The notes beneath the pieces are model-generated. The model saw only the letters and a program-made list of their open reading frames with translations, did not search any database and was not told where the DNA came from. Position numbers and translations under genes: made by a program. A stretch of 64,000 bases of DNA from Epiperipatus broadwayi (taxonomy: Eukaryota > Animalia > Onychophora): contig JAQFVV010000006.1 in the NCBI GenBank assembly GCA_028023455.1, positions 15,562,001 to 15,626,000 of the forward strand. The letters are read 5' to 3'. Shown one piece after another: positions 1 through 62,814 of this stretch (its first letter is position 1; each line of letters starts with the position of its first letter).

Positions 1-443
1 ATAAAATAATAATTTTTTCAGATCTGACCAATGATGATGATGATGATATGATAAAAATGCCTACAGAGATTCACAACCCTGCAAAATGCCAGAAATGAAT
101 AAAGGCTATTGTGTCCCTAGAAGTAAGCATATATAATGGAAAAAGTTGTCACTCTGAAGGATGAAAATGATGAGCAATGATTTCTTATTTTCTGATTTTT
201 TCTTTATTGAAGTTAATTTACAATTTTCATCTGCCATGAGTAGATTTTGTGATGATCGCTATATATTTATTACATATGCACACACATACCCAATTTAATA
301 GCATAATGGCGAGAAAAGTAAAAGAAGTAGTAAAATCTAACTATAACTAAAAATTTAATATGAAGTTAATAAATGTAGATGCATACTAAGAGCCAGTTTG
401 AATTTAATTCTTTACCTATTTGATCTGCATATAAAATCATATA

Positions 444-678
444 TCTCATGATTACCTACATAAAGATAACAGAGCCAAAACTCTCCATGCAGTAATGCCA
501 CTCACGCCAGACTAATCGATGGATACAAAAAGATTTGTGCATAAAATTTTTACCTAGTGTCTCATGATTACCTACATAAAGATAACAGAGCCAAAACTCT
601 CCATGCAGTAATGCCACTCACGCCAGACTAATCGATGGATACAAAAAGATTTGTGCATAAAATTTTTACCTAGTGTCT
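444..678. repeat. Exact tandem duplication, period 116 bp, overlapping a family A copy
   Basis: tctcatgattacc...tttttacctagtg at 444-559 repeated at 560-675. Confidence 0.9.
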
Positions 679-730
679 GCTCATCCAATTCCGTCAGACT
701 AGTTTATAGCTTGCAGCTTTGATCAATGAC
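462..730 (-). mobile_element. Family A HHR-retrozyme-like element, partial, decayed ribozyme
   Basis: Matches family A (aaaactctccat...cagactagttt); core on minus strand mutated to TTGATCA...TAAAC. Confidence 0.8.
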
Positions 731-759
731 TTTACAAGCAAATGAACATGGATTGAATA

Positions 760-1020
760 CATTATAGTTAACTAAAAATGTAAAAGATGGCTCTGGAGAA
801 TTGCATTATATCCTAAGATCTAGATGCAGTGCTCTCAGATCCAAAACTCCTCACTGACAAAAACCACAAACTAGAAACTAGTCTGGGGATATTGGATGAG
901 TAGGCACTAAATAGGGATTTTATGCACAAACCTTCTTGCATCTATTGATTACTCTGGTCTGCACTGGGTGGCCTTATTGTATGGAGAGTTAAGGTAAGAA
1001 ATGATGATCATGTGATGTTT
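760..1020 (+). mobile_element. Family A element, inverted partner of 462-730
   Basis: tcctca CTGACAA aaac cacaa acta GAAAC TA GTC tgggga at ~848-890; core G8 lost, consistent with CpG decay of CTGACGA. Confidence 0.85.
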
Positions 1021-2864
1021 TGCGGTTTAATACATAAAGATATGCACATTACTGTATCAGCACATAACAGACTTCCACTAGCTTCACCAATATGTGACTC
1101 TACTACCAAAAAAATAAATTAATCATTAAAGTATTTCTTTTGTTGTATCTCAATCCCTGAGTGTTAATTGAAAATGCTCTACTAATACAAATATTTATAT
1201 ATTCGTCATCCATTCCTGGCGACAAAAAACTACAATAATGTAACTAACAGATAAAAATAAATATTAAAATTTATACAAATGCAAATATTGTCTAAGAGAC
1301 AAAAAATAATGATATAAAATATTTATATGTTAATTTATTGATGTTAATTACAAGAAAAACAATATTTTATTGTTCGTTCCAAAAAATTTATTCGCTCTGA
1401 AGATAAAGCACTAAACTTATCATGCGGAAATAAGTAGCGATGAGACGTAGAAGCAGTCCTTTTGGTACTAGTTATGCGCATTGATAAAAAGCAAACAAAT
1501 CTTGGCCAAACTTGTTTCTAGCACTGACATAATTAGCAGCGTCTTTAAAAAAGAACTCCAGGCATTGCTTAAATTAATTTTAAAAAAAACAAACAGTTGA
1601 ATTAGTTATATTTACATAATTAGGCAAAATATTGACTGATTGTTGTACTATCGATATTTTCAAGCACAAATTTATGATTGATTTTTTTTTTCTGGGAGTG
1701 CAGTCAGCACTGCTTATGGTCCAGTTGCCACTGTCCAAATGCATTTCCTTCATGGAGTAAAACCACAGAAATTCAGTCTCCTATATTTTCTTTACATTTT
1801 TTTTGTTTGGTTCCAAGTGTTCCAAGTGCCTTGGGGATTTAGTGCATGGCGGAATCTGGAAGTCTGTCAATTTCTCTGTTTCAAAAATTGAAACATAGAA
1901 ATTGACAAATTCCTAGCAACAAATACTCATCTCTAATGATTGTAAAAATGTCACTCATTATTAGATCTTTGCTGAGTACCGCTTTCCATGTCAGAAATTT
2001 TAACAAGATTTTACATATAAATAAATACCCATTATAAGGCAGTTGTGTGTTTTTTTTAATTACTGCATTGGTAAAGTATTAGGCTTTAGAGGTCAAAGTC
2101 CACGAATCGTGACGCGATTTTCACATTTCCCTGCTGAAATTTTTTGTAAACTCCGAGCCATAAATAGTAAGATTATTTATTTATTTAATATTTCTTATAT
2201 TTGTATTGCAATGCGTCTTTACATTTTATTAATTAGCTTTGGAAACTTAAAGTCTTTCTTGTACATAACTTTATTTATAACAATTTCTTTAATAGTTTAT
2301 AAAATATTCATCACCACATTAAAAAGATTTCTATTATTAACTCGATATTCCACTCAACAGTCACAAATGAAAGTGTTGAAACCTTACCCCCTTTTTCTTT
2401 TACTCTTTTCAGTATGAGATAAATAAATGTATATAAAAAAATCATTTTTTCATCTTTAATGGTATTTATTTAATAAAAACGTTGAACTCAAAAAATAAGT
2501 GAGATGAGAAGAATACAAATTGATAAAAATTGCAATGAAATATTTAACATAGACATGTTCAAATAAACGAATAGATAAACGGCTTTATTGCTCCGGAGTT
2601 TATAAATAATTCAAGAGCACTGGGTGTGAACCGACTTTAAATCCCAGAATACCAAAATTAATAAATACTATCTACAAAAAAAAAAAAGATACATAATGTT
2701 TTATAAAAAAACAAGACGATAACAGAATAAAACTGATTATATTCTATGCACCAAAGGAACTGAGCAGGGAAATTTTCAATGTTCATTTAATATGTTGGCA
2801 TTGCAGATGTTATTACTACATAATTTTTCATATATAAATTAATACACTATACAGGCTTAAATCT

Positions 2865-3977: not shown

Positions 3978-4110
3978 ATGAAAGTGCTTTAGGTATATTT
4001 GATTATGGCAATAAAAATAATGAAAGTGCTTTAGGTATATTTGATTATGGCAATAAAAATAATGAAAGTGCTTTAGGTATATTTGATTATGGCAATAAAA
4101 ATAATGAAAG
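3978..4110. repeat. Minisatellite, 42-bp unit x3.2
   Basis: atgaaagtgctttaggtatatttgattatggcaataaaaata repeated exactly; explains ORF 3971-4177. Confidence 0.95.
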
Positions 4111-6741: not shown

Positions 6742-7205
6742 TTTTTTACAGAAATGTTTTATTTTTATATATAAAAGAACATTTTCTTCTGAATATTGTT
6801 ATTATAGAGATTAGGATCACAGGAAAACAGCTTTCTAGAAATGAGGTCACTCACCAGATTGTTATAATATTCAGCAATATTGTAAAAATTTCAGAAAAAT
6901 TCTAAACTTTTAAAGCATAAATTGATAGATGTAGTAGTTATTAATTAAAAATTCATTCAAATTTTTAACTCATGTTTTTTACAGAAATGTTTTATTTTTA
7001 TATATAAAAGAACATTTTCTTCTGAATATTGTTATTATAGAGATTAGGATCACAGGAAAACAGCTTTCTAGAAATGAGGTCACTCACCAGATTGTTATAA
7101 TATTCAGCAATATTGTAAAAATTTCAGAAAAATTCTAAACTTTTAAAGCATAAATTGATAGATGTAGTAGTTATTAATTAAAAATTCATTCAAATTTTTA
7201 ACTCA
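6742..7205. repeat. Near-exact tandem duplication, period ~233 bp
   Basis: acagaaatgttttatt...aaatttttaactca starts at 6748 and again at ~6981. Confidence 0.9.
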
Positions 7206-8444
7206 AACATGAAACAAATAAGATTTCATTAATTTTGAACACTGAATGGGCTCCATCTAAAATTTAATGACATGACATTTTGTTTTGACTAAAATATAAT
7301 TGTTAAAATAATTTTAGAAATCAAATGTGATTTTTTAAAATTTATTTAATTCTAAACAAAAATATCTATCAAATGAAGTCAAATTTATTATATTCTGATA
7401 AATAATAATGGTTTAATATCAAACTGAAAGTTGAAAACTTTAATTTAGTGAGAAGAATAAAATCTTTCAGAATGCTAGCAGAAAAATGAAAAGCTTAATT
7501 TTTAAACTGTTAAGTATTATGGAAAATAATTTAATGTTCTTACAAATCAAATTCAAATTGAAAGTTATGTATATACAAAATTAAGAGTAACATTTCAAGC
7601 CTTAATTACATTTTTTCTGTGTCAAAATCACTGCCGATAAAAGCACTATGATAATATAGTATACTAATGAAGAAACTGTTAAAATAAGATGCTGGGAATA
7701 TGATTTGATGTTTATAGATTGGAAGTTGGTAATGAGGGAGGGAATATTGGTTTTCAATAAGATAGAGTGAACTCAGAGTGTCTCTGGGCATTTGACCTAT
7801 ATAAAGGAACTTCTGATTGTAGCTAAAGAACTGTTTTAAATTACATTATATGAATATCTTAAATATAATAACAACAATAACAACTAAACCAATAATAACA
7901 TCAATAACAACAACAATAATAATACCAATAATAATGACAATTAGAATAACCATAATAATAGTAAAAACAATGATTAATAGTCTATTATTTACATAGCACT
8001 GACTATACATGTAATATAAGAAAGGGAACAAATCTCTGGTTATATGCTTTTACGAATTTACATCCACTCACCTGTGAGCATCAATTTGTAAAGCATAAAC
8101 AATAATAATAAATAACAGCAACAATAACTACAGCATTAATAATAATAGTAGCTATAACAATATTAATAATAATAATAGTCGTTCATAAATGAATACATCT
8201 ATTCTAACTCCAAAGAGAAAAAGAAAAGAGAGAGAAAAACTGTTCTAGAAATGAGTTTTGTGATGACTATACAAAACCAATGTGTGACCCCATATACATT
8301 GACATATAGAATAAGCTGGTCTATTTTTCTGTTAACTTGATATTTTGCAATATTGATCTTTAATTTCCTCAGTAAAAAAAAAATCCTTTTAAATACTTCA
8401 ATACCATGTGTTATTATAGCTCACCAATGTATTATATTAACAAC

Positions 8445-8695
8445 AGTAGCAAACTCTATACAGTAGCGCCACCAAGTGCAAGGCTTACTAATCAATGGAT
8501 GCAAGAAAGCTTGTGTATCCCTATTTAATGCCTATTCATTCAATATCCCCAGACTAGTTTCTGTAGCTTTCATCAATGAGGAGACGTGAATTTGATAGCA
8601 CTGCACTCAGATCGTAGGTATGTAATGCAAATCCGCCAGTGTCATCTTTTACCTATTTAGTTAACTATACAGATAGAAACCTAAAATGACATGAT
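8445..8695 (-). mobile_element. Family A element, internally deleted
   Basis: Core TTGATGA AAGCTACA GAAAC TA GTC with stem II deletion. Confidence 0.8.
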
Positions 8696-8974
8696 GGTTT
8701 TTATGTATTATATTCTCTGCAACATCTTCTCAATGAAAATCAATTTATTGCACTTTCTTTAAAATGTCTTTAAGATAATCCATATCATGTAAAAGGGTCT
8801 AACTCACCTCTAAAAAACTATGCTCAAATTCATCATAAAATATCCTTTTAGAAAGTCTTGCATTGTTTATTTATTTTATATGACCAATCCAATTAAGATG
8901 TGATTTTACAATAGTGAATTCTATAATATCACATCAAGTAACTTGAAGAACACATAGATCGGTTTTATGATCTT

Positions 8975-9370
8975 AAAACAGGCAAAACTCTCCATATAGT
9001 AATACCACTCAGTTCAAGCCAGAGTAATCAATGGATGCAAGAAGGCTTGTGCATAAAATCCCCATCTAGTGCCTACTCATACAATATCCCCAGACTAGTT
9101 TCTGGCTTATGGCCTTCGTCAGTGAGGATTTGATCTGAGAGCACTGCACCTAGATCTTAGGATCTAATGCAACCCTCCAGCAGCCATCTTTTATCTCTAC
9201 TTAAGTACTATGTGTCTTAAACTGAAAACATAATAATATTTTCAATCCAAGCTCATTAGCTTATATAATCATAAAGGTCTAAACTTAGTTCAGTACCTAT
9301 ACATTTTGGTGTCTTTGGTTCTTTTATAACCATAGCCACTACACCACTATCCTATTGGGCAGGATTGGTT
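8975..9370 (-). mobile_element. Family A element, near full monomer
   Basis: Colinear with 19418-19873. Confidence 0.85.
9087..9128 (-). ncRNA. Type I hammerhead ribozyme, family A, intact core
   Basis: Minus: TCCTCA CTGACGA AGGC CATAA GCCA GAAAC TA GTC/TGGGGA; stem I TCCTCA:TGGGGA, stem II GGC:GCC, stem III palindrome ACTAGT; predicted cut between 9093 and 9092. Confidence 0.8.
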
Positions 9371-9494
9371 TTTATCCAATAAACATGATCTTGTCATTAT
9401 ATTTTTAAAAGTTTGTGAAGCATACTTAAAGGAAACTTTTCTAATGCCTTTATATCTGCTGATAAGATGTCCAAGTTTCACACCTATACAATAA

Positions 9495-10604: not shown

Positions 10605-11045
10605 TGATACACAGAGGCAAACTCTCCATACAGTAGCGCCACTCAGTGCAAGCCAAAGTAATCAATGGATGCAGAAAGGTTTGTGAATAAAATCCACCCT
10701 CATCCAATATCCCCAGACCAGTTTCTAGCTTGTGGCTTTCCTCAGTGAAGAGCCTTGGATCTGAGAGCATTGCACCTAGACCTTAGGATCTAATACAACT
10801 CTCCAGAAAGTCATCTTTCACTTTTTAGTTAACTATACAGCTTTGAGTCCATAAGGTTTTCAATTCAAACTCGCATGTATAGTCATATAGATTTGAACTC
10901 AATTCAGGATCTATACATTTCTGTGTCTTTGGTTCTTTAGTAAACAGTTACCATAATCCTATTGTATGGAAGGTTTTGCCTCTGTGTTATCAGCTTGTGT
11001 AAGCATTAATAATGGTGATGTTATGTGGTCTTTATATGTTGCAGT
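10605..11045 (-). mobile_element. Family A element, full monomer
   Basis: Colinear with family A; interrupts the RTE between 10600 and 11045. Confidence 0.85.
10703..10759 (-). ncRNA. Type I hammerhead ribozyme, family A, intact core
   Basis: Minus: TCCAA GGC TCTTCA CTGAGGA AAGC CACAA GCTA GAAAC TG GTC/TGGGGA TA TTGGA; two-part stem I with internal loop. Confidence 0.8.
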
Positions 11046-11339: not shown

Positions 11340-11635
11340 TTTACTTTTAAACCACTACACATCACATGATCACCATTTCTTATGCTTGCTTGTAACTGTT
11401 ATTAAACAGGCAAAATCTCTCCATACAATAGTGTCACTCAGTGCAAGCCAGAGTAATCAATGGATGCCAGAAGGCTTGTGCATAAAATCCCTAGCTAGTG
11501 CCTACTCATCTAGTTTGGGGATATTGAATTAGTAGGCACTAGGTAAGGATTTTATGCACAAGCCTTCTGGCATCCATTGATTATTCTTGCTTGCATTGAG
11601 TGGCACTACATTAAGAAGAGTTTTGTCTGCTTTAA
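11340..11635. mobile_element. Family A foldback fragment
   Basis: 11405-11510 inverted at 11525-11630. Confidence 0.85.
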
Positions 11636-16399: not shown

Positions 16400-16590
16400 G
16401 GATGGTTGCATTAGATCCAAAGATCTCAGATCCAGGGTTCCTCACTGGTGAGGGCCATGGGTTAGAAACTGGCTGGGAATATTCAATGAGTATGCACTGG
16501 ATATGGATTTTGATGCGCAAACCTTTTTAGCATTCATTGCTATCTATGGCTTGTACTGTGCACTATCGTATGGAGAGAGTTGCAAACGTT
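16400..16590 (+). mobile_element. Family A element, diverged
   Basis: tcctca CTGGTGA gggc catgg gtta GAAAC tg gc tgggaa; core mutated. Confidence 0.7.
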
Positions 16591-18529: not shown

Positions 18530-18785
18530 ATTTCACAGAAGCAAAACTCTTCATACAGCAGTACCACTCAGTGCAAGCCAGAGTCGTCAATGGATGCAGG
18601 AAGGTTGCTGCATAAGATTCCTATGTAGTGCCCACTTTGAGTCTGAAAGGAATTTTTTATGTGTTAACCTTTCTGCATCCATTATTCAGGCTTGCACTGA
18701 GTGGCAAGTACTGTATGGAGAGTTTTGTCTCTGTGAAAAACAGTTTGTGTAAGCATAAAGAATGATGATCGTGTGATGTTTGATG
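18530..18785. mobile_element. Family A foldback fragment (no HHR core retained)
   Basis: 18531-18630 inverted at 18650-18740. Confidence 0.85.
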
Positions 18786-19369
18786 ATAATCATTATTAAT
18801 ATTATTTAACCATTGCTTGATTACTTACTATATATGTGGCCCTATGTAGTTTAGTATCTGAGCAACAGAATGAAGAGTAAATAATCCCTAAATTGCAGCT
18901 TAGTTTTACCATTTTCTGCGGAATGAGGAACCATTAGATTACTTACAATTGATCTGCTTGAGCAGACTAAGATTAATCTTCAAAGTTATATTATAAACCT
19001 TAATAAGCCTTTTTACTTCATTAAGTTGTAAAGTATTCAGTATCCTGCTTTCATTACTATAGTGACGGAGTGACAAATTCAAGAGCGGATGCTTCACAGA
19101 GAGAAATTACATTTTGTCACCTCAGTGCTTGAATGTCATATGACTTCCCTAGCATCAGACCATTTGATGTTATAGCAATTAGAAAATAAAAGTAATTGAA
19201 ACAATAAGTATCACTTTAAATTTGGGATTATTTTGAGGCATACAGATAGGTAGGTGCAACTATTCCATAATATTTTACAACCAAGGGTAAGCATATGATT
19301 ATTGCATATAAACTCTATTTTAATCTTGATTTAAATGAAAATATTAAATGTTTTAGTTTAATCATGCAT

Positions 19370-20110
19370 TACACGATCATCATTCTTTCTATTTAAACAA
19401 TCTCTTTACATAGATGCAAAACTCTCCATACAGTAGTGCCACTCAGTGCTAGCCAGAGTAATCAGTGAATGCAGAAAGGTTTGTGCATAAAATCCATATC
19501 TAGTGTCTACTCATTCAATATCCCCAGACTAGTTTCTAGCTTGTTGCTTTCATCAGTGAGGAGCTTGGGATCTGAGAGCACTACATCTAGATCTTAGGAT
19601 CTAATGCAACCCCCTCCCCCTAGCAGCCATCTTTTATTTCTACTTAACTACAAAACTATGAGTCTGAGAATGAAAGAATAATATTTTCAATCCAAGCTCA
19701 CTATCCTATATAGTCATTTAGGTCTGAACTCAGTTCAGTAACCATACATTTTGGTGTCTTTGGTTCTTTAATGACCATAGCCACTACTATCCTATTAGGC
19801 AGGATTGGTATTAAGCCACTAAACATTCACATGATCACCAATTTTTATGCTTGCTCAAGCTGTTAAAACAGGTAAAACTCTTCATACATTAATAAATGCA
19901 GAAAGGTTTATGCATAAAATTCCTATCTAATGTCTAATCATCCAATATACCCAGACTAGTTTCTAGTTTGTGGCTTTTATCAGTGAAGAGCGTTGGATCT
20001 AAGGGCACTATACTTAGATCTTAGGATCTAATGCAGCTCTCCAGCAGACACTTTTTACTTTTTTTAGCTAACTATAAAGCTTTGAGTCCAAAATAGAAAC
20101 ACAATGATAT
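19370..20110 (-). mobile_element. Family A head-to-tail tandem, period 456 bp
   Basis: aaaactct at 19418 and 19874; second HHR (19941-19996) has CTGATAA. Confidence 0.9.
19521..19562 (-). ncRNA. Type I hammerhead ribozyme, family A, intact core
   Basis: Minus: TCCTCA CTGATGA AAGC AACAA GCTA GAAAC TA GTC/TGGGGA. Confidence 0.8.
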
Positions 20111-20134
20111 ATATGATTATACAAACTAATGACC

Positions 20135-20410
20135 TTTTCATTACTGTGTTTTCATTTTGAACTCAAAGCTTTATAGTTAGCTAATAAGGTAAAAGAGGGC
20201 TGGAAGGTTGCATTAAAATCCTAAGATCTAGGTGCAGTGCTCTCAAATACAAAGCCCCTTGCTGATGAAAGCCACAAGCTAAAAACTAGTCTGGGGATAT
20301 TGGATAAGTAGGCACTAGATAGGGATTTTATGCACAAACCTTTCTGCATCCATTGATTAATCTGGCTTGCACTGAGTGGCACTACTATATGGAGAGTTTT
20401 GCTTTTGTAC
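20135..20410 (+). mobile_element. Family A inverted arm following the tandem
   Basis: CTGATGA at 20262-20268, AAAAC in place of GAAAC; reverse complement of the adjacent tandem's second unit. Confidence 0.85.
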
Positions 20411-22479: not shown

Positions 22480-22650
22480 CTACAGAAAGCTTAAGTAATC
22501 GATGGATCCTAGATTGTATATGGACATACAACATCCTAATCCTTACACCGGTTTTGGAATTTTGCGTTCATCAGTGAAAATTAGGATTCAGAGTTAGAAC
22601 CTTAATTATCTAACAGCCACCTTTTATTTATACTTTTCAAGCCAATAGCC
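22480..22650 (-). mobile_element. Old family A-like subfamily copy
   Basis: Minus: cctaattttca CTGATGA acgcaaaattc CAAAAC CG GTG taaggattagg; downstream cagccaccttttat as in family A. Confidence 0.5.
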
Positions 22651-22739
22651 TGAAACTTTTTAAAAAAACTTTCATATGATTTGAATAAAAATTAACTTAT
22701 CTAAAAAGTAATGTATCTCTGATATGAGTCAGTTCCTAT

Positions 22740-23100: not shown

Positions 23101-25129
23101 AAAATCAAATTGAATAATTACAACAACTATTCCTCAATAAATAGGATAGCATACTTAGCCAATCAGTGAGAGCTATGATTTTGGTCAGCTGTTACTAAAT
23201 GAAAAAAGACAGGGACTGATTCATATAAAGAAAATAATAAACTTTTTTTGGTTGCAGATATTATAAATATTTTACTAACTGTAGGTTTCTTTTGTTTAGG
23301 GTATTAATCTACATAGGCACAACAAGCTAAATGTTTAGGCCTATAGTTGGAATAACACTGGGATGAATAAAATATATAAAAATTGATTTAGTGTCAGATC
23401 TATATAATTATACAAGTGAATTACATTGAGTTCAAAACCCTAGGGTTTTTTTAATTTCAGCTATTAGCTTAAGTAGGATAAAGAAGTAAAAGATTGCTGC
23501 TGGATGATTAAGTAATTAGTTTCCACTTTGAATTATAATTAATAACAGATGCAGGCATTTAAAAACTGGTCTGGCAATACTAAGATTATAACAGTATACT
23601 ATATGGTATCTATTAATTACAAAAACTTACAGTAGATGGTGCTAAAATAAGCTCATGGTAGCTGATTGGTTACATTTTTAGCCAATAACCATCATTTTTA
23701 TCCACAATTTTTTTTAATTATTTCTCAGTAATATAAGTTTAAAAATGAATATTATTTTTAAAAATATTTCAACTTTGCAAGTATAAAAAAAGTAATAAAC
23801 TGAAATATGTAATTAGAAGAAAGAAGGTTGTTCTTTTGCTATTAAAATATTTAATAAATGAAATCAGATTTGTTTTTGCTCTTTTTTGAAAGTCTGAATG
23901 TTCAGATTCTGCAAAGAAGTTTTAAATGCCAACTCCCCTCCCAAAAAAAAAAAAACAATGGCCACAGTCAATATGAATATGTTTTTTAATCAGCCAATCA
24001 CAACTTTCTATTTTACCATTATAACATTCTTTTGTTTTGTCTTCTTTAAAACAAATATCCTAAAATAAAATTTAATTCTAGTCATAAATATTTTTGTTAA
24101 AAAATAAATATTGCACAAATATTTTGTAAAAGTAATTATAAAAATATAAATAAACTATAAAAAATATATGTTCACATTTACAAAATCTAAACAAAAACAC
24201 GAGTACTCTCAAAAATTCTTACGAGCACTTCCAGGTCTTAGAATAATGACACTATCAAACAGTTACACTGTTTATTCATTTGTATAAGTTTCTGAATACA
24301 ATTCTGGCATTTTGAGATTGCTTTCAAAAGTTAATAATTCAATATTATTTTAAATCGAAATTTTGCCATCAAATGAACACACAACTAGAAAATGAAAAAA
24401 ATTGAAAACAAAATGGTCAAATCAACACCGTTACATATGAAAAGTATATACTTTTAGTTAGCTACTAATTACATTAAGATTCTTTTAGATATTATTGTAA
24501 TTGCTAATGGTTTAATTCTAATATAATTATAAGATGAAAAAAAATAATGAAACTAATCATTTAATAGATATGGGTACGATATTTTCCATATTTCAATATA
24601 ACTGACATATATAGATTTGCATGTTTATAGATTATATAAGGTGTTGAGGGAATAAGTCAAATAAGATTTTTCTGAACCTAAGGTTTTTTTTATCTGAGCT
24701 TTATGATTTATTGTTTATTTTTTGAAGAATTAGCAACTACAATAATGTGTAAAAAAATCCTAGTTTAAATACTATGTTAAAAGTATACTAATGCTTTAAA
24801 TCATTTATATGAGTAGGTAAAAGGTATGCACAGTACTGGAAGTCATTGTATAACCTATTAAATCAATTCCCAGTGCTGATTCAATATTTTATGAGGCCAC
24901 AGATTGCAATTTAGGAACACTGAAAATTTATTTGATTAGTTATATATGTAGAATTTATCCCAAACAAAATATTGACTGCAAAAAATGCCTTTATCAGTTA
25001 TAATAAAATAGTCCTTCATTATATTAGAGATTATCCACTTAATGAATAATATTTCTGTAGTGTAATTTTCACTAAGCAAATCTCATACAAGGTAGAGACT
25101 GTTTCTTTCTGCTTTTAACATCTTGTGGA

Positions 25130-30223: not shown

Positions 30224-30759
30224 AATGGAAAAAAAAATGCTGACATTCAGAATATTCTAAAATATGGATTTAAATGTATTTAATTACATGATCTTAACAC
30301 ATGAAGTGAGTAGAGCAAAGTAAAATAATAATAATTAATTACAGAAAATGCTAAACCACTTTAATTAATTCTTAAATACCTTTATATATGGCCAAGAGCT
30401 TTGGTTCTGATTATGAAGATTATGTTAATTAGTTTCCTCTCATGTACACCAATTTTTTCCCCTCAAAATAAAGATTATTTTTCTAGAATCAAACAGCCAT
30501 ATTTCATCCAAAAATGTTTAATTGTCCATTATTAGAATATCTTTTTAAGGTTGTATATAGACTGGCTATTTAAAAAAAATCCAAAATTACTTAACAATCT
30601 GTAACATTTCCAGCATTGGTCTTGATTTAAACCCATATTACAGGCCTGGACCCTAATATACCATAAAATTCTTCTATTATGTACTACTTGAATATATAAA
30701 ATTTGCTTGCCAATAAAGATAAAATAAAATAAAATAAATATTTTAATTTGATTTATATT

Positions 30760-30915
30760 ACACAGAGGCTAAAGTTTCCATAAGTAGCACCACCATTGCA
30801 AGCCAGAGTAATCAATGGATTCAAGAAGGTTACTCTAGCTTGCAATGATGGCGCCACTGTATGGAGAGTTTAGCCTCTGTATAAACATTTTGTGTAAGCA
30901 TAAGTAATGGTAATG
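30760..30915. mobile_element. Family A short foldback
   Basis: 30760-30815 inverted at 30830-30882. Confidence 0.8.
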
Positions 30916-31109
30916 GTGTTGATCTATATTATTAATATTTATAATAATTGTATTATAAATAAGAATAGTAGATCTAAGAATAATAAAAAATGGATAAAAC
31001 TTTCATACTTCCCTAAAATTTATCATGCATTGCTAAAAAATAATATATACATAGATGAATGTATTAACATAGGAATGGTCAAACAGTAAAAATCTTGATA
31101 AATTTATAA

Positions 31110-34590: not shown

Positions 34591-36844
34591 AGAAAAAAAA
34601 AATTTTTTTTTTTTGACTTACGTATCTGCCTACTTTATAAATTTTTCTAGGTTCAAATACCTAGATGGCGCCCTGTAGTGCAGTTTATGTAAGTCACCTT
34701 CTCTGGATTGTTACAACACAAATACTGTTACTATAATCTATAGATAATTCTTTGGTAATGCGTACACATGTATAATAACCATATTTCAATATTGTTGTAA
34801 TTATTATTTTTGGTTCATATGTAATGCCCATACACGGATCATAATAAGATCCAAACATTGTTATTATTATTTCTATCTTCTACTGAATTTGTGTTAATAA
34901 ATCATGTATGTCTATACATTTGTCATGTCATTCCCTGGTTTATCACATCTATCCAATTATATCCACACTTAATTCAATAATCTATGTGTATATTCAAAAC
35001 CTATGAAATATTTAAAATAATATTCTGAGCGGTATCAACATATTAGGTTCTGATGGTGCTGGTGAGTATCTTAGATTAGTTTAATAATTCTAGTGCATGA
35101 CAGGCTGAGTTTGAATCAATAGAGTCCTTGTTTCACCCTGACCACCAGGACGAAAAAAAACGATTACCATTAGTAGCATCAGGAGCGTTGGTCAGATAGT
35201 GGTTTTGGAGCACTAGCAAATAGGTTAAAGTTTAGTAATGTTCTGCGAATACTATATCCCGGACATGCTGGGTTTAAAGTACTTTTGCTAGGTCTCTGAA
35301 TCTTGTTGGCTGATCACACGATTCTGACTGTTACTGTATGTACATATATAAAACATCAATTATTTGATTAATAATTGGCTAATGATAAATAAATGGAAGG
35401 TTATGTAATATATATTTATACAGGGTTTTTATACCTTTAAAATATTTTATGGTTTTAATAGGTTATAGTTAATTTTATAAAAAAAGATAGATGTCGCTAT
35501 GTATGCAAGGTAGATTATAATTGTAAATTAATTGAAGCACATTAAAATGGGAAAAAAATTAATATTTGCCGAAGAGCTTTTTGTGTGTATGTATATGATT
35601 ATTATTACATATACTATTTCTATTATATATTTTATATTGTATTATATCATTGATTTATTTTAATTACATGGTGTTATTATGGCAAATATATATAATAATC
35701 ATTTAATATACATACTGAATAGTAGCTAATTATTACATCTTTTGATATAGTGTTTTGTACCTTTACCTATCGTGGCTCAAAAACAATCACAACTTTTTCA
35801 GCTTCTATATAAGCTTATGATCTTTTTTGCCAGAAGTCAAATCCTAACTAAATTTGAGTTGGTGGTTTATTTTTTAAACCTTCAACAGATTAACATTACC
35901 TCTGCTCTCCCTAGTGGTAATTTTTGTAAATATTCAATATTTTATTTTAATCTTTAAACCTTTACTCTATATTAGAGTTCAATAAATTGTGTTTGATTTG
36001 TTAGAAATATGGTTATAAGTGAAAAATATTCTAAAAAATCATATTTGATATTTGAATTTTGCAAATTTAAAAAAATTGTAAAATGAAATACGTAATGAAA
36101 ACATTTATCTTTTTCTTATTGGCTAATTAGTTTAATGCTATTAAAAAATAAATTAAAATCTTTGTTAATTAAATTTCATTTGCTAAATGTATGAAAGCCT
36201 GTTCTAAAATTTAAAATTGCATTTACAATTATAAAAATATCACAAATATTTTAACTGACAGCATTTTTTAAATCTTTACTTGCCAGTTACTTCCTGTAAC
36301 TGGGTTATTAATTTGAGGATTTTTTTTTCCTTTCGGTTATTTTTGACAGAATATAATGAGCATATTTTTTTTTTTATCATTACTTTGAATTTATTAACTT
36401 GTACTTATTAAAAATAAATAATTTTTTTAAAGAAAAAAAATTATATAGAATTATGAAAACATTAAAAAAAAAAAAATTACTATGCACATATTTTTAAAAA
36501 ATAACGATAAAATATTTAAATAAATGGCAGAAATTTTTTTTTGCTTGTCACTAACAATAAAAGCAAAGTTTACAAGAGTTGTCCTGCAATTGTTCTCTCA
36601 AAGAATTTACCAATCAGTGTTTTAGCATAAAGCTTTGGCTTCTTTGAAAAATTTTTTGATATGTGGAATCTACTCTTCCTATTTTTTAAATTAATAAATC
36701 AATATTATTTTTAAGTCCATTTTTTACCATCAAATGAATACAAAACAATAAAATAGTGCTACAGGTAGTTGTAGGAGTATTGGAAAGCTGAAGAACCAGA
36801 AACATTCTCCAAATAAAGTACTTTGTATGTAGCAATTAGTTAAA

Positions 36845-37200
36845 CCATCAAACATCACACAATCACCATTCTTTATGCACACACAAGCTATTTGCACAAA
36901 GTCAAAACTTTCCATGCAGTAGTGCTACTCAGTGCAAGTCAGAGTAATCAATGGATGCAGGAAGGATTGTGCATAAAATCCTTATCTAGTGCCTACTCAC
37001 CCAATATCCCCAGACTAGTTTTTAGTTTGTGGATCTTAGATCTAAGGCTCCTCACTAATGAAAATCCACAACTAGAAACTAGTCCAGGGATACTGAATGA
37101 GTAGGCATTAGGTAGGGATTTTATGCACAAACCTTCCTGTATCCATTGATTACTCTGGCTTGCACTGAGTGGCACTACTGTATGGAGAGTTTTGCCTGTG
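36845..37200. mobile_element. Family A foldback with inversion centre inside the HHR
   Basis: 36900-37030 inverted at 37065-37200; centre tggatcttagatctaagg; plus core CTAATGA. Confidence 0.9.
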
Positions 37201-38334
37201 TAGTAATTAGTTAAGTCCTTTTATCAGAATCAAAAGAGAAGCTATCATCTGTTACATAACAAAGGCCAAGCTAATTACAATAAATCACCCACCCACCCAA
37301 CTTATGTGAAATATGACAGAGCAAGAACAGCTACATACTTTAGTGTCATCTATTGGAAGCTTAAGTAGTCAGTAATTAATTTATATTAGTGTATTATTAA
37401 TTAAAACTAAAATAGGAAGTTGCTCTTATCATCTAAACCAAACTATAAAATATCTTTTTTTTTTATCTTAATAAGTTTTGAGACTCGACTATATTTTAAA
37501 AAGACAGAAAGAGAGAGGATATATATATACTGCTTTTCTGATTTCCGTTTTCACGATTCTATCAAAGACATAACTAAGCAGTGCATTGTATTATTTTTAA
37601 AAAATTAATTTTGTACTATAATCTACAACTTTTTCCAATTCAGAAGTCTTTAATAGTAAGTACTTTTTTTTTCAGTGAGCCTTTAACTGAAACTACAGCA
37701 CAGTATTATATTACTGAAGCAATAAACACCTCAAGACCCATAAAATTTATTTCCAGTTATTGTAAGACTGTGAGTCTGGTATTTTATCTACAACAATTCA
37801 AGCAAATATATCGTTTGGCACTAAAAACATTTATTTTTTATTCTTTCCCTGTTCTAGTTTACGTTTTAAGTTATTTTAACCAATCAGCATGAATTATTAA
37901 ATTTAATCTACACTAATTAATTAAAATATTTCGATTCCCATTCATTTTGGACATGAAATATGGAATCTACGATAAATTATTTGCCAAAATTATTTAATAA
38001 TTTTCGCTTAATTGCACTTGTTAACGCTAACGATTATAGGGGCACCCTTGATGAGACATTGAAAGATGAAATATACTTTACATGAAAGTTTATTTACACA
38101 AGTATATTACTGAAATTAAATTGAAAAATTACAATCAAAACATTAAAAACAGAGAGAGATTCTAAATCGTCATATATTATGTAGGTCATTCAATATTGCA
38201 GTAGCAACTTTCCATACAGTAATGACACCCAGTACCAGCCATTGTAATTAATGGATTTTAGGAGGAAGAAGGTATTTGGGTATTTAACCAATTTAGGTAA
38301 AATGATAATGGAAAATACCCAAATTTTCACTACC

Positions 38335-38595
38335 CAGTGGAAAAACTCTCCATACAATATCACCATTCAGTGCAAGCCAGAGTAATTAATAGATGCAGGA
38401 AGGTTTGTGCATAAAATCTCTTTTAGTGCCTACTCGTCCAATATCCCCAGACTAGTTTCTAACTTGTGGCTTTCATCAATAGGAACCATCCTGCATCCTG
38501 GCTTGCATTGAATAGCACTACTGTATGGAGAGTTTTGCTTCTGTGTAAACAGCTTGCGTAACATAAAGAATGGTGATCATATGATGTTTAGTGAT
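38335..38595. mobile_element. Family A foldback
   Basis: Minus HHR 38437-38485 TTGATGA...GAAAC TA GTC, then inverted arm. Confidence 0.8.
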
Positions 38596-38779
38596 TCTCA
38601 ACACAGCAATAAGCAGACTTTTTGAGTACTACGTCTCTCTTTTATTCTTTCTCTATGAGCAGTTTTGTTCTAAAGTGAGTCATATAAAAGTTATTTTATC
38701 TTAAAACAAAAATTATATAAAAAGCTAACCATAACATAAATATTATAGCTAATTGAAGATGGATTAATTAATATAGTAT

Positions 38780-39160
38780 CTCTATGTCTAATGCCTATTC
38801 ATTCAATATTCCAAGAGTTTATAGGTTGTGGTTTTCACCAATGAGGATACTTGGATTTAATGGTTGGGACTTCAAAATGTAGAGATGCTGAACTGGGTTC
38901 AGATCTATATGACTATACAAGCTAATGAGCTTGAATTGAAAACATTACTCTTTCTGTTTTGGATTCCTAGTTTTATAGTTAACCAAATAAGTAAAAGGTG
39001 GCTGCTGGAGGGTTGTATTGGAGTTTAAGATCTAGGTGCAGTGCTCTCAAATCCAACACTCTTCACTGATGAAAGCCACAAGCTAGAAACTATTCTGGGG
39101 ATATTGTATGATTAGGCACTAGATAGGGATTTTCACTGCTATGTGGAAAGTTTTGCCTCT
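38780..39160. mobile_element. Family A minus fragment plus plus-strand copy
   Basis: Plus HHR 39052-39108: TCCAA CAC TCTTCA CTGATGA AAGC CACAA GCTA GAAAC TA TTC TGGGGA (stem III G>T). Confidence 0.8.
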
Positions 39161-39394
39161 ATATCCACATATACTGTATATTATCATTTTATTCACTGCT
39201 TTATAAAGCAGAACTCATTAGTTATTAATACCTATTGTATGTTTTTATATACATATATGGAATGGAACTGTTTTACAAAAAAATAATTTTAAATATAAAA
39301 ATTTTAAATCAATAATTTAGATTTAATAATTTTAAAAACTTTAAAATCAATTTTAAATCTATTCATCCTATTAACAATGTTATTTGTCTTAATA

Positions 39395-40160
39395 ACAATA
39401 CCAAACTCTTCATACAGCAGTGCCATGAAGTGCAAGCCTTCATAATCAATGGATGCAGGAAGATGTTTGCATAAAATCCCTATCTAATGCCTACTCATCC
39501 AACATCTCCAGACTAGTTTCTAGCTTATAGCTTTCATCAATGAGAAAGTCTTGAATTTGAGAGGACTGCACCTAGATCTTAAGATCTAATGCAACTCTCC
39601 AGCAGACACCTTTTACCTATTTGGTTAACTGTAAAGCTAGGAGCCGAAGATGAAAACAGCATAATGTTTGAAAACCAAGATCATTTGTTTTTACAATCAT
39701 ATAGATCTGAACTCAGTTCATTATCTATATATTTTGATGTCTTTGGTTTTTCAAAAACCACAGTCACCCTTAATCTATGGGCAAGATAGGTATAAAACCA
39801 TTAAAGCATCACATGATAACCATTTCATATGCTTACACTTGTTGTTAATAAAATTATAAAACTCTCTTTACAATAATGCCAACAATTGCAATCATTCATA
39901 ATCAATGGATGCAGGAAGATTTGTGAATAAAATCCCTATTTAGTCCCTACATGTTCACCCTTAGCAGACTAGTTTCTAGCTTGTGGCTTTCATCAGTGAG
40001 GAGCCTTGGATTTGAGAGTACTGCACCTAGATCTTAAAAGGTGGTGCAATTACCCAGATGCCACTTTTTATATATTTGGTTAACTATAAAGCTAGGAACC
40101 CAAGATGAAAACACCATAATGTTTGCAATCCAAGATCATGTTTTTATAGATATATATCTA
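39395..40160 (-). mobile_element. Family A head-to-tail tandem, period 456 bp
   Basis: aaactct at 39403 and 39859; HHRs at 39498-39546 (TTGATGA) and 39961-40010 (intact core, broken 3' stem I). Confidence 0.85.
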
Positions 40161-43269: not shown

Positions 43270-43580
43270 ACAGAACATATGAACTGGACCATTACAATAT
43301 TTTGATGTCTTTGGTTTGTCAAAAACCACAGTCACATTATCCTATGGGTAGGATAGGTATAAACTATCAAAATACTACAGTGCTCTCAAATCCAAGGATC
43401 TCAGATGAAAACCACAAGCTAGAAACTACTCTGGGGATGTTAGCTGAGTAGGCACTAGATAGGGATATAATGCACAAGCCTTCCTGCATCCACTGATTAC
43501 AGAGGCTTGCATTTGGTGACACTATTATTTAGAATTTGGTACTATCATTAACAGCATTCATATGAAATAGTGACCATATG
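43270..43580. mobile_element. Family A rearranged pair (minus fragment, then plus copy)
   Basis: Plus HHR remnant ~43392-43440: ctCAGATGA aaac cacaa gcta GAAAC TA CTC tgggga. Confidence 0.75.
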
Positions 43581-43999
43581 ATGTTTTGAAAGTTTTTCAT
43601 CTTCTATATTATTTTGTAAATAATTATTGCTATATGAGATACCTGTTTTTTCTCTCTTATTTACATAATAACAATTTTGGAAAATTTTTACTATCTTTAT
43701 ATTATTTTTATTGTGCCTTCTATTGGATACAATTATATTTTACAGATTTGAAAAAGATTGTTAGATACTCAAAACTATCAGATAATTTATTAAAAAGCAT
43801 TGCAAAACTGTATATAAGTGAACTTTAAAGAGATTTGCCAAAATAATGAAACATTATTAAGCATTTTGATTTTAAATGATTTTTTTCTTTAAAAATTAGA
43901 ATTTTGGAGATATAAAAGATAATATGTCCAGAAACTCTGTTAATCAAGATGAATATTCTCTTCTTATATTATCATAAGCTATCTTTCAATTCATTACTT

Positions 44000-44520: not shown

Positions 44521-44589
44521 CACTGATAAAATATATTTATTATAAATCTTAATCATTCAAGACAAATCATAGTAAACCAATAAACATTC

Positions 44590-45443
<854 letters not shown>

Positions 45444-52135: not shown

Positions 52136-52319
52136 TATGCATTTCTATGTATGGATTCAACAAAAATTAACTCAAACATAGATATTTTGACTATCCCTCT
52201 TATGTAATAATGGAAAAAAATCAATAAGACCATACCTGTTGAATGGGTACAATTTCTGTATGCTCCTAGTAATGTAAATATACCTCGAAAGACAACATTT
52301 TATTACACAGAAGCAAAGC

Positions 52320-52780
52320 TCTAGCAGCCAATTTTTACCTTATTAGCTAACTATAATGCTTTGAGTACAAAATGAAGACAAAATAATGTTTTCAATTTGA
52401 GCTCATTAGCTTGGATAGTCATATAGGTCTGATCTCAGTTCAGTATCCATACTTTTTGGTGTTTTTGGTTCTTGAATAATCACAGTCACCATAATCATTT
52501 TGGGAAGAATTGGTATTAAAGCACTAAACATCACATGATCCCCATTTTTTATGCTTACACAAGCTGTCTACACAGAGGCAAAACTTTCCATACAGTAGGC
52601 CATTTTGTGCAAGCCAGAGTAATCAATGGATTTAGAAAAGTTTGTGTATAAAATTCCTGTCTAATGCCTACTCATCCAATATTCCCAGATTAGTTTCCAG
52701 CTGTTGGCTTTCATAAATGAGAAGCGTTGGATCTGAGAGCACTACATCTAGATCTTAGGATTCAATGCAATTCTCCAGCC
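52320..52780 (-). mobile_element. Family A monomer, circularly permuted
   Basis: Begins at agcagcc(a)tttt, passes the aaaact(c/t)tcc junction at ~52580 and ends at gcaattctccagc. Confidence 0.85.
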
Positions 52781-60900: not shown

Positions 60901-62814
60901 AGTAAAGTAATAAAAACACCTTACCAAACAATCCAAGCTAGACAGATACAATAAGCTGACAATAATCTGTTGTGTGTTTAACCTGATAAGCAACAATGGG
61001 GACAACTATTTAGCATATTATTGTATTAATGTATATGTGATTAATAAACATGTTAAAGTATGACTGCAGAGATTATTTCACACAAACCCAACAAACACAA
61101 AGTCTGGGGAAAATGTGTCCATGTAAATATAGAGATTATAACCCTAATCAATAGACTTTTATTGTAGCATCAGGCCAATTTGTGAAATTATTAATACATC
61201 AGTGATCCAATATAAATATAACTAAATAAATCAACATTGCAGTTTTTCTCATTCTTTATTTCATTTTTTAATACATTACTTTCAACTATTGAAGATAGTA
61301 AATTCCAGACATCTGAAATTACACTGATTATTCTAATTTGCAAGTGGCAGCTGATGAAAAACAGTGATGAATAAAACACGTGCAGTTGTTTTGTGGCATA
61401 ATTTGTAAGTACTAAAATGGTAATATCTAGATCTAAATAATTATTTCACTTAGAGATTGGTATAACAATTATGGTTTTTCATTTGAATTTTTGGTTAAAA
61501 TAGTAATAATATAATTTTTTTATTTGTGAAATTAGTTTCTTGACATTCGAAGTAGCATTTCTGATTGTAAATAAGAAGAAGAGTTATACTACTGTTTTTT
61601 AGAATGTTTCTTATTATTTCAATGACTCAAGCAATCTATTTAAATACCTTTTGATATATATAATGATAGACAAAGATGAAGATATCCAAATCTGGGAAAG
61701 ATTGGTTCATCTTCATGAAGTGAAAATAATTTGCATAGTAATAGATTAGCTTCAGCTAATAAAAATAATTTGCATAATAGTAACTACTTTTGTACTTATT
61801 TATAATTTGATCAAACTAATACTATCTTAGTGTTGGGTGTTAAATTAATGTTCAAATTTGGCAGATTAAAAAATTACGTTAGAAACGAAGACACTGTCAA
61901 TTACCAATAAGCATTGCCTATTTACCACTATCATGCTGTTTTATATATCATGTTATTGATTTATTAAATATTATTTCTGATATAAAGAGTCTCCTCTGTT
62001 ATATTTCCATTTTCTTTTCCACATTTTCTCTCTACATTTTACTGAATTCAATCCCTTATGTAATTTGGAGCCCACTTAACCATAATGCTTCATACTATGT
62101 TTATTCTTCTGCGTTAACTATGACAATGGAATTATTCTGTATGCAAACACATTTTCATCCTTTAATTGCATCTATAATTCTGTCAAACTCATTAAGCATC
62201 ACATGATCACAGGGTGACAATACTGTATGGAGAGTTTTGCTTTGTTTATCAACTCATTAAGCTAAGAATACTGACTTCAATCCTAGGTTAGAGTAATTGG
62301 TCTTAGTATGAAAGAACTTTAATATAGTTTATTTTATTCTTATTGGTTTATTTAAGCTATTTTATGTCAGCTGACAATCTACAGATTAAATTGAATATAG
62401 AAATTTATAGAAGTTACCATTTTAGAAAAAAAAAGTTGTCAAAATAATAGGAATGCTTTTATTTAGTGTGCACTAAAACCCCCCAAAATAATTGTTTCTT
62501 CAACTACAATAGGGTTTTTTAGATTTAACTTAAAATAAAACCATGGAGAGTCCTGAAATTATTAACTCCATTCCCATGTTGACCCCTTCCCTCCATACTT
62601 TTATTTCAAGTTCAATCCTAAAACTGCAGTTGTAGTTAAAGATACAATTATTTTTTTGGTTTTAGTGCACGAAAGTATTTACTATTGTAATGATCCGGAA
62701 AAAGAAAGACTTAACATAATCTGCACTACAGAGTGCCATCTAGGCATTTGAACCTAGAAAATTTATAAAGTAGGCAGATACATAAGTCAAATAAAATTTT
62801 TTTTTTTATTTATA

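Follow-up and report, generated by a model that had tools for sequence, protein, structure and literature searches.

The 64,000-nucleotide stretch of Epiperipatus broadwayi DNA analysed here (the window) is low in GC (29%) and contains no coding sequence. Positions 19367-20402 hold a single insertion of a non-coding mobile repeat, Family A, whose unit measures 455/456 bp. The insertion consists of two inverted arms: one of 1.75 units (19367-19873 and 19874-20136) and a shorter partner, joined head-to-head at about 20110-20136, where both alignments overlap. Its features are as follows.

19367..19417, minus strand: "tail", the 3'-terminal extension of the left arm (reference ~1-52, long-class 3' end), located by taking a trimer of the reference as BLAST query; the arm ends at sense position 52
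19418..19873, minus strand: complete 456-bp Family A unit (BLAST), the sense (hammerhead) strand being the minus strand of the window
19507..19570, minus strand: type I hammerhead with an intact core at 19556-19527 and a predicted cut after the C at 19527
19874..20136, minus strand: upstream 5'-truncated unit of the left arm (reference ~169-455, with an internal deletion of ~30 nt)
19954..19983, minus strand: second hammerhead core of the left arm, inactivated (CTGATAA, G8>A)
20110..20402, plus strand: partner arm in inverted orientation, 5'-truncated (reference ~156-455 plus 2 nt); its 3' end, at 20402, is of the short class
20262..20291, plus strand: hammerhead core of the inverted arm, inactivated (AAAAC, G12>A), the 5' strand of helix I being mutated as well

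Reference positions are those of a majority sequence built from 67 copies, in which the predicted ribozyme cut lies at 346/347. We infer the sense polarity, that of the hammerhead strand, from the fixed 3' ends and variable 5' ends of the arms.

The Family A unit and its copies

Used as a BLAST query, the unit at 19418-19873 gives 34 HSPs in the window, corresponding to about 17-19 insertions with 29 arms; Family A totals 6,721 bp, or 10.5% of the window. The original prediction of some 20 copies is confirmed, but most of its "copies" are arms of head-to-head inverted pairs and not independent units. BLAST confirms the two head-to-tail dimers it described, at 19418/19874 and 39403/39859, and the circular permutation at 52320-52780 is borne out by an arm that spans the unit junction. 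Tandem Repeats Finder, run on the window, does not report the 456-bp dimers, whose second units are truncated or carry indels. The other copies in the window are listed below, with the strand where one applies; "ends" are reference positions of the outer 3' termini, and TSD stands for target-site duplication.

467..1033: head-to-head insertion, short end at 10 and long end at 68, 12-bp TSD TACATAAAGATA; a perfect 116-bp duplication lies within its left arm
8403..9405, minus strand: Family A copies, with a core-intact hammerhead at 9122-9093 that carries the GGC:GCC variant of helix II
10615..11034: head-to-head insertion, ends at 4 and 56, 10-bp TSD; the core of its hammerhead (10745-10716) is intact, while helix III reads ACUGGU and is therefore no palindrome
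11347..11635: head-to-head insertion, ends at 65 and 11
16400..16583, plus strand: single diverged arm, 74% identity
18532..18781: head-to-head insertion, ends at 11 and 55, 15-bp TSD
30756..30937: short head-to-head insertion, ends at 13 and 67
36840..37199: head-to-head insertion, ends at 65 and 6, 10-bp TSD
38166..38596: head-to-head pair at 38339-38596 (ends at 3 and 62) and a fragment at 38166-38265
38868..40156: arm at 38868-39133 (plus strand), its hammerhead core at 39066-39095 intact; on the minus strand, an arm of 1.66 units (39403-40156), the second head-to-tail dimer
43299..43586: diverged arms
44570..45012, minus strand: nearly unit-length arm with the TGGT:GCCA variant of helix II and a mutated core
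52313..52779, minus strand: 1.03-unit arm crossing the unit junction
62208..62248, plus strand: 41-bp 3'-terminal fragment

The 5' end of the arm at 44570-45012 adjoins an (ATA)148 microsatellite.

A first-look count of the 5.6-Gb genome gives at least 10,742 Family A candidates. The unit at 19418-19873 shares 86-89% identity with 40 further copies of nearly full length in the genome, and a single period is common to 40 full units. No ORF was found in a trimer of the majority sequence, where the longest stop-free stretch is 73 aa, in line with the earlier reading; the unit is closed on itself. Copies are diverged by about 7% from the majority sequence, and the conservation profile of the genomic copies is flat along the unit, with no signal of selection on these copies. 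Nothing in this divergence or in the flat profile shows present-day activity. The monomer RNA has a folding z-score of -5.7 in the sense and -2.8 in the antisense orientation.

A type I hammerhead on the sense strand

The predicted complete type I hammerhead with a two-part stem I is present on the minus strand at 19570-19507. It reads TCCCA-AGC-TCCTCA CTGATGA [A AGC AACAA GCT A] GAAAC TAGTC TGGGGA-TA-TTGAA, with two mismatches in distal helix I. In the majority sequence of the 67 copies the type I core is complete, CUGAUGA...GAAAC UAGU C, with all core nucleotides in place. In helix I a GGC/UA internal loop separates 6 bp from 5 bp; helix II consists of three Watson-Crick pairs over an A.A mismatch at 10.1/11.1, and helix III of 2 bp within the palindrome ACUAGU.

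Standard pairs fill 90.9% of the pair cells across the 67 copies, as opposed to 30-46% when the partners are slid. The core is intact in 31 of the 67 copies and in four of the 14 hammerheads of the window (9122, 10745, 19556 and 39066). A generic descriptor of hammerheads, which asks for the core boxes, three or more pairs in helix II, at least five of six pairs in helix I, U16.1 and H17, retrieves five motifs from the window and none from each of 20 shuffles. The Rfam hammerhead models, Hammerhead_1 among them, had been put forward as a check; none matches the whole window, a 101-nt piece or a perfect copy (L012:1786-1871), either at the gathering score or at E<=10. RNAalifold recovers neither the hammerhead fold nor any other consensus fold from the 67 decayed copies, and a literature look-up with the motif sequence gave no match.

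Covariation in stem II had also been claimed. The three variants cited for it, AGC:GCT (19521), GGC:GCC (9087) and TGGT:GCCA (44734), all occur, but covariation is real for one pair only: 10.2-11.2, which across the 67 copies is AU in 50, GC in 11 and GU in three. It probably records a single subfamily event. The remaining helix pairs show decay only, pair-count measures over the 67 copies do not exceed those of shuffles, and TGGT:GCCA belongs to one decayed copy with a mutated C3.

Because helix II combines the A.A mismatch with only three Watson-Crick pairs and helix III is unable to form intramolecularly, activity of the monomer is predicted to be poor. When two motifs are cofolded with ViennaRNA, the dimer is favoured by ~6 kcal/mol; the double-hammerhead pairing is not predicted, and an ACUGGU control behaves alike.

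Insertion anatomy and the template RNA

We compared 36 head-to-head pairs, from 30 genomic loci and the window. In all of them the inverted arms are joined head-to-head, with 5' starts scattered across the whole unit, and the inner breakpoints differ between the two arms in nearly every pair. The 3' ends fall into two classes, short (reference 3-14) and long (46-68); counted from the ribozyme cut, the short ones lie ~112-123 nt and the long ones ~155-177 nt downstream. In 34 of the 36 pairs one arm has a short and the other a long end, leaving a tail of ~50 nt on one side only; by our own arithmetic, independent choice at p=0.5 would give this result with a probability of ~1e-8. TSDs of 9-15 bp with 87% A+T accompany 20 of the 36 pairs (the control median match is 5), and all 20 of these TSD-verified pairs are short/long. 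Fourteen public runs were found to contain Family A, all as contigs of uncertain type and none recorded as RNA; the contigs of four of them, each from a different study, end at the same two zones beside AT-rich flanks.

A large number of copies have the appearance of long palindromes whose outer ends are fixed (for example 11347-11635, 18532-18781 and 36840-37199), and one such palindrome is a sub-threshold match to a plant miRNA hairpin in Rfam. Such copies could be read as a fold-back or MITE-type DNA transposon, a cut-and-paste element with the arms as terminal inverted repeats and the hammerhead as an incidental passenger; a TIR-bounded DNA element had been named as a reading to check. The inverted look is real, but it is due to paired retro-insertions with unequal arms and termini. 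Unequal inner breakpoints, outer termini about 50 nt apart, a TSD length that is not fixed and arms that extend beyond one tandem unit all speak against a DNA transposon, as does an identical anatomy in a reverse-transcriptase-encoding Penelope-like element (PLE) of the same genome. This explanation is largely refuted, and we regard it as extremely improbable.

The arms longer than one unit bear on a second alternative, that the copies are solo pseudo-LTRs (pLTRs) or 3' fragments of a longer coding PLE with an internal region outside our sample. In its favour, the hammerhead of PLEs sits in the pLTR and 5' truncation yields mostly 3' fragments (PMC4209133, PMC8557442). However, every arm of this kind (14 of 55 unbiased arms, and 30 seed copies) runs past the tail into the same 455-bp unit and never into coding sequence. 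The common period of the 40 full units also argues against it, and so do BLAST and nhmmer searches of 38 PLE loci, chosen as top-scoring for GIY-YIG, which find no Family A homology inside the elements or at their ends; the only matches at these loci are ordinary neighbouring insertions, and other non-coding families are present there too. We therefore hold a fragment origin, which had been listed as grounds for doubt, to be unlikely.

Arms reach up to 1.75 units. The same 14 of 55 arms read through the cleavage site, and the 5' ends of arms are not enriched at 346/347. Together with 3' ends lying 112-177 nt past the cut, this means that the template was an uncleaved multimeric or a religated circular RNA. 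The original prediction had Family A amplified through self-cleaved monomeric or circular RNA, and for linear monomers the DNA does not support it. A role of hammerhead-cleaved linear monomers as templates of reverse transcription would agree with the presence of the hammerhead on the template strand and with the retrozyme RNAs of other animals, which accumulate as monomers, both linear and circular (PMC7229834). It predicts, nevertheless, cDNAs that start at 346 and run off at 347, where we see 3' ends at 3-14 and 46-68, no peak of 5' ends at 347 and a quarter of the arms spanning the cut site. Already contradicted by the DNA ends, it has very little probability left.

A separate model, that of a trailing reverse transcriptase on one RNA, predicts that the long-end arm does not exceed the short-end arm by more than ~55 nt; it fails in eight of 34 pairs and was rejected.

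Whether the ribozyme serves propagation at all is a further matter. Family A could be a short PLE-dependent element that arises from read-through or pLTR-promoted linear transcripts, with a hammerhead that is an inherited passenger or works only together with a helper protein. In vitro, PAc insertion is unaffected by hammerhead mutants, cleavage is protein-dependent and no RNA-seq reads end at the cut (PMC11167929); in Family A itself the DNA copies bear no trace of cleavage, helix II is weak and helix III is not stable. On the other hand, the core and helices of the majority sequence are flawless despite the decay of individual copies, and helix II has undergone a compensatory change between subfamilies, which together imply selection on the source copies. 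In addition, arms of more than one unit keep an exact 455-bp period, for which the template has to be multimeric or circular, and every animal retrozyme tested so far has yielded circular RNAs (PMC7229834). A propagation that does without the ribozyme is possible but rather doubtful.

A probable Penelope-like route of integration

The insertion anatomy described above is the published Penelope-like signature, which agrees with the original assignment of the repeat to non-coding, hammerhead-bearing elements of retrozyme-like or Penelope-related type. PLE insertions are 5'-truncated, form partial tandems, have beside them an inverted copy that is 5'-truncated as well, and carry a tail of 30-40 bp on one side only (PMC8557442). 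In vitro, reverse transcription starts at two positions inside the RNA, both of them beyond the hammerhead; the two DNA strands are each cut, and cleavage favours AT-rich DNA (PMC11167929). Family A resembles PLEs (PMC4209133, PMC8557442, PMC11167929) in its 5' truncation, partial tandems, inverted 5'-truncated partner, one-sided tail, AT-rich targets and two internal start zones of reverse transcription ~100 nt past the hammerhead. It differs from them by a tail of ~50 nt instead of 30-40, by a hammerhead of the canonical metazoan type (CUGAUGA, with a tertiary-loop helix I) and not of the minimal PLE type, and by the absence of an ORF for reverse transcriptase (RT) and GIY-YIG endonuclease. 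Since it has no ORF and RT/GIY-YIG ORFs occur elsewhere in the genome, Family A can be no more than a non-autonomous dependant.

At least 10,241 GIY-YIG candidates were counted in the genome, and an RT/GIY-YIG ORF at L061 (4300-7002) has RVT_1 and GIY-YIG domain pieces above the Pfam cut-offs. Whole PLE ORFs gave no Pfam match, probably owing to composition bias. In an intact RT/GIY-YIG PLE family of this genome, 3' ends lie +85..95 or +132..171 nt past the family's own hammerhead cut, and five of five complete pairs combine the two classes. The sampled PLEs have a different, minimal hammerhead with a UUGAAAA core (U3:A8 variant), and an Rfam scan of seven PLE loci detected no hammerhead family. 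A hammerhead-like segment upstream of the PLE ORF at L065 was rejected, as it proved to be an insertion of a further non-coding repeat, for which at least 1,556 candidates were counted.

Family A and the resident PLE thus have a layout in common: hammerhead, ~90-120 nt, first start zone, ~50-60 nt, second start zone. In both, nearly every insertion also combines one short with one long 3' end (34 of 36 for Family A, five of five for the PLE). Between Family A and the intact resident PLEs there is no detectable common sequence, and the hammerheads are of different types (canonical CUGAUGA versus U3:A8 minimal). We tentatively raise the possibility, in itself somewhat doubtful, that PLEs mobilise RNAs in trans according to their geometry rather than their sequence. 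If so, the target-primed reactions on the two DNA strands would be mechanistically coupled and asymmetric; one possibility would be an RNP dimer with two start sites, one per strand. Such coupling is not seen in the published in vitro PLE system.

Among known elements, Family A belongs to the animal retrozymes and is not a new kind. Our comparison set was the metazoan non-LTR retrozymes (coral, mussel and axolotl repeats and newt satellite 2; Cervera & de la Pena 2020, PMC7229834). With these it has in common a non-coding unit several hundred bp long that occurs both dispersed and in tandem, the lack of LTRs, TSDs longer than 4 bp and a very large number of copies. The hammerhead is likewise of type I, with 6 bp in helix I, and its helix III is a short palindrome that requires two motifs to act together. 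Axolotl HHR_Amex2, too, has a mismatch at the base of helix II. In contrast to this set, for which RNAs of 170-400 nt are reported, Family A has a unit of 455 bp, at or above that range; its copies are mostly head-to-head pairs of 0.1-1.7 units instead of long tandem arrays, and the motif is missed by the Rfam models. Linear and circular RNAs, described for metazoan retrozymes, are putative in Family A.

The proposal that a retrozyme is a non-autonomous PLE derivative has also been made for non-LTR retrozymes of Xenopus and other vertebrates, where abundant PLEs co-occur (bioRxiv 10.64898/2026.07.22.740005). There the link to PLEs is sequence homology to the pLTR; for Family A, where no homology was found, it is the integration scar and the geometry of the module. 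Plant LTR retrozymes (PMC4918200) are likewise non-autonomous and hammerhead-bearing, with a proposed spread via circular RNA. However, their type III hammerheads in LTRs of ~350 bp, PBS/PPT, 4-bp TSDs and Ty3-gypsy helpers have no evident counterpart in Family A. Schistosoma Sm-alpha, also a short and abundant retroelement, is non-coding and has a type I hammerhead, but it is tRNA-derived and SINE-like, whereas Family A has PLE-type ends and neither a tRNA-like head nor an A-tail.

From the insertion anatomy and a resident PLE with the same two-end geometry, we conclude that Family A is very probably a non-autonomous, non-coding animal "non-LTR retrozyme", a retroelement copied by PLE reverse transcriptase and GIY-YIG endonuclease. 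The DNA copies show that target-primed reverse transcription takes place at a staggered cut in AT-rich DNA, on either strand, and produces the 9-15-bp TSDs. Each cDNA starts inside the RNA, at reference 3-14 or 46-68, with one zone used per side in nearly every insertion, which gives two inverted arms and a ~50-nt tail at a single end. Templates exceed one unit and are uncut at the ribozyme site; both cDNAs end at variable points, giving the 5' truncations, and the arms are joined head-to-head. For the RNA stage we propose that the hammerhead would cleave transcripts of tandem copies as a dimer, by way of the ACUAGU palindrome of helix III, and that the monomers would be ligated into circles of ~455 nt. 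The multimeric or circular RNA would then serve as template for the helper PLE.

For annotation, this means that palindromic Family A insertions should be masked as PLE-dependent retrozymes and not as MITEs, miRNA hairpins or satellites. The class of Family A is an ordinary one, yet its copies make up a clean and abundant natural data set on a poorly understood integration mechanism. The near-perfect pairing of short with long ends is a quantitative constraint on models of PLE priming on both DNA strands. Altogether, a non-coding RNA of 455 nt would appear to hold all that the PLE machinery needs in cis: a hammerhead, a spacer and two start zones.

Family A and its hammerhead motif

The stretch at 19367-20402 is a single compound insertion of Family A, a repeat with a 455/456-bp unit. 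When the unit was searched against the window by BLAST, 34 HSPs resulted; mapped with a trimer of the majority-rule reference, they resolve into 29 arms, which belong to about 17-19 insertions and make up 10.5% of the window (29% GC). No credible coding sequence was found in these 64 kb. Across the 5.6-Gb genome, in which the window lies at C6:15,562,001-15,626,000, a first-look search returned at least 10,742 candidates, and near-full units were present in all 40 scored loci at 86-89% identity. The median identity of 40 full copies to the majority sequence is 92.8% and the conservation profile is flat along the unit, as expected for neutral decay from a moderately old burst. Family A words occur at a share of 0.5-0.66 in runs X1-X14, labelled as about ten organisms from five studies; the family thus occurs in several related taxa or samples and is not private to this assembly.

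The original prediction placed a hammerhead on the minus strand, and it is indeed there:

19556-19527, minus strand: hammerhead core CTGATGA...GAAAC TAGTC, flanked by proximal helix I TCCTCA/TGGGGA

Distal helix I reads TCC(C)A/TTGAA, with a GGC/TA internal loop between the two parts; within 19367-20402, the other two motifs have been inactivated, one by G8>A and one by G12>A. In an alignment of 67 copies (A2), the majority sequence, CUGAUGA-A-AGC-CACAA-GCU-A-GAAAC-UAGU-C, has every invariant core position in place. Helix I comprises 6 bp and 5 bp on either side of an internal loop; helix II, an A.A at 10.1/11.1 plus three Watson-Crick pairs; helix III, only A-U and C-G around UA. Canonical metazoan type I hammerheads have 6 bp in helix I, 4 bp in helix II and 1-2 bp in helix III, which is capped by a small palindromic loop, and work as dimers (PMC4209133; Cervera and de la Pena). 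Judged by sequence, the putative Family A ribozyme is of this architecture: its ACUAGU palindrome is impossible to close within one molecule, while pairing between two motifs can occur. The basal mismatch of helix II is shared with axolotl HHR_Amex2, a ribozyme that cleaves weakly in monomeric form and better when dimeric (PMC7229834).

When the structure is imposed on the 67 copies, 90.9% of cells hold standard pairs, against 30-46% with slid partners, and a generic hammerhead descriptor, which hit none of 20 shuffles, found five motifs in the window. Of the covariation proposed for the stem, one helix II pair stood (AU:50, GC:11, GU:3) and the other pairs show decay only, so that covariation lends the predicted fold thin support. 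The core is intact in 31 of 67 copies, 20 of which carry at most one stem mismatch; among window hammerheads, 4 of 14 keep it. None of Rfam's hammerhead models gives a score for the motif, perfect copy included, and RNAalifold on the 67 copies did not recover the fold. The identification is therefore based on the descriptor rather than a curated model, and any catalysis is predicted. The sense RNA of a consensus-like copy (453 nt) folds with z = -5.7 relative to shuffles (antisense, z = -2.8), extending hammerhead helix I into a long helix. A literature look-up of the motif sequence gave no match.

Four perfectly identical tandem duplications, at 444-678 (116x2, within a Family A arm), 3978-4110 (42x3.2), 6742-7205 (233x2) and 40359-40508 (73x2), reflect either very recent duplication or assembly artefact. 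An (ATA)148 microsatellite at 45001-45443 adjoins the 5' end of the arm at 44570-45012; Naiad/Chlamys-clade Penelope-like elements (PLEs) reportedly prefer microsatellites.

Other hammerhead-like and hairpin elements

A hammerhead-like segment next to a PLE at genomic locus L065 proved to be part of a separate repeat family:

L065 8513-8800: non-coding repeat with hammerhead-like segment, helix III palindrome ACCAAUUGGU

It has at least 1,556 genomic candidates, shows a spacing of ~410 bp and forms head-to-head arrays, such as C10:15,371,383-15,373,014. In helix I, the strands are similar to those of Family A; positions 10.1-11.1 are G-C instead of A.A.

At 45995-46029 (plus strand), the window has a different hammerhead motif within a palindromic element: its core is CTGAGGA, helix II has 4 bp, and helix III is a 10-nt palindrome, AUCAGCUGAU. 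A decayed hammerhead-like motif at 22574-22544 (minus strand) has AAAAC for GAAAC, with ACCGGU; together with 22609-22739 and 23369-23509, which match Family A positions ~125-265 at only 66-68% similarity, it probably represents a related older family. A long near-perfect MITE-like hairpin at 55122-55288 matches several plant miRNA precursor models below threshold; the likeness is one of hairpin shape and no evidence of miRNA.

Paired arms and the template RNA

Nearly all Family A insertions consist of two inverted arms joined head-to-head. On the hammerhead strand, numbered so that the cut follows position 346, arm 5' starts are scattered across the whole unit and lengths fall off from <100 to about 800 nt: this is classic 5' truncation. 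With target-site duplication (TSD) bases assigned to the flank, the 3' ends fall into two zones: one at positions 3-14, about 112-123 nt downstream of the cut, and another at positions 46-68, about 155-177 nt downstream of it. Of the 36 pairs, 34 have one arm ending in each zone (P of about 1e-8 under independent choice with p=0.5, by our arithmetic) and hence carry a ~50-nt tail at only one insertion end. TSDs of 9-15 bp, 87% A+T, occur in 20 of the 36 pairs (control median match, 5), all 20 of the short/long type. Contigs with very high Family A word depth from four public runs (four studies) have loose ends in the same two zones, adjoined by AT-rich sequence. With arms and termini that are unequal and TSDs that vary, a fold-back DNA transposon is ruled out.

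These features are those listed for PLEs: heavy 5' truncation, partial tandems making pseudo-LTRs, an inverted 5'-truncated copy adjoining the 5' end, and a tail of 30-40 bp (~50 nt in Family A), often at one end only (PMC8557442). The purified protein of the Anolis element PAc cuts and extends both strands, prefers AT-rich DNA and begins reverse transcription internally, at two adjacent sites that lie about 85-92 nt downstream of the hammerhead cut, the sequence between them forming the tail (PMC11167929). Paired target-primed reverse transcription from PLE-type start zones, with the hammerhead strand as template, placed Family A at AT-rich sites.

Cleaved linear monomers as templates, one alternative in the original proposal, are contradicted by the arm ends, which show no 5' peak at the cut site. 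Among 55 unbiased arms, 14 exceed one unit and read uninterrupted through the cleavage site: the template RNA was longer than a unit and uncut at the ribozyme. Every such arm runs on into the unit again, which makes it unlikely that the copies are fragments of a coding PLE; Family A is a closed, non-coding 455-bp unit. For PAc, unprocessed RNA is the main template and hammerhead mutants insert too (PMC11167929). That the ribozyme is irrelevant to Family A mobility seems to us possible, if rather doubtful. We favour a route in which multimeric transcripts would be cleaved by the dimeric hammerhead, the products may be ligated to circles, and multimeric or circular RNA would serve as template.

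Resident autonomous Penelope-like elements

A GIY-YIG search of the genome gave at least 10,241 candidates, including an intact element:

L061, C12394:20,940,001-20,950,000: PLE, 3,135-bp tandem plus inverted 5'-truncated arm, with intact 901-aa ORFs
L061 7302-7339: PLE minimal hammerhead; 19 more copies in L044, L050, L051, L055-L057, L060-L063, L065, L067 and L068

Its RT (RVT_1, 44.9 bits) and C-terminal (GIY-YIG, 39.5 bits) pieces score over the Pfam cut-offs; whole PLE ORFs gave no Pfam match, probably owing to composition bias. The minimal hammerhead of this family follows the GIY-YIG stop codon at a distance of about 300 nt. In its core, UUGAAAA, U3:A8 replaces C3:G8; helix II has 6 bp with the usual unpaired 5' nucleotide, helix III is ACGU, and helix I shows a compensatory change between two subfamilies (GGC:GCU vs UCC:GGA). 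Cores of A3:U8 type (ATGAATA, ATGATTA) occur at L068 3686-3648 and 9333-9301.

PLE-family insertions end +85..95 or +132..171 nt after their own hammerhead cut, with one end of each class in all five complete head-to-head pairs (L055, L056, L060, L062, L068). Short/long pairing is thus common to Family A and the resident PLEs, as is the layout: hammerhead, ~90-120 nt, first start zone, ~50-60 nt, second start zone. Between Family A and the sampled PLE loci, we detected no sequence in common. Both this relation of geometry without homology and the near-obligatory short/long pairing of Family A bear on the mechanism of PLE integration.
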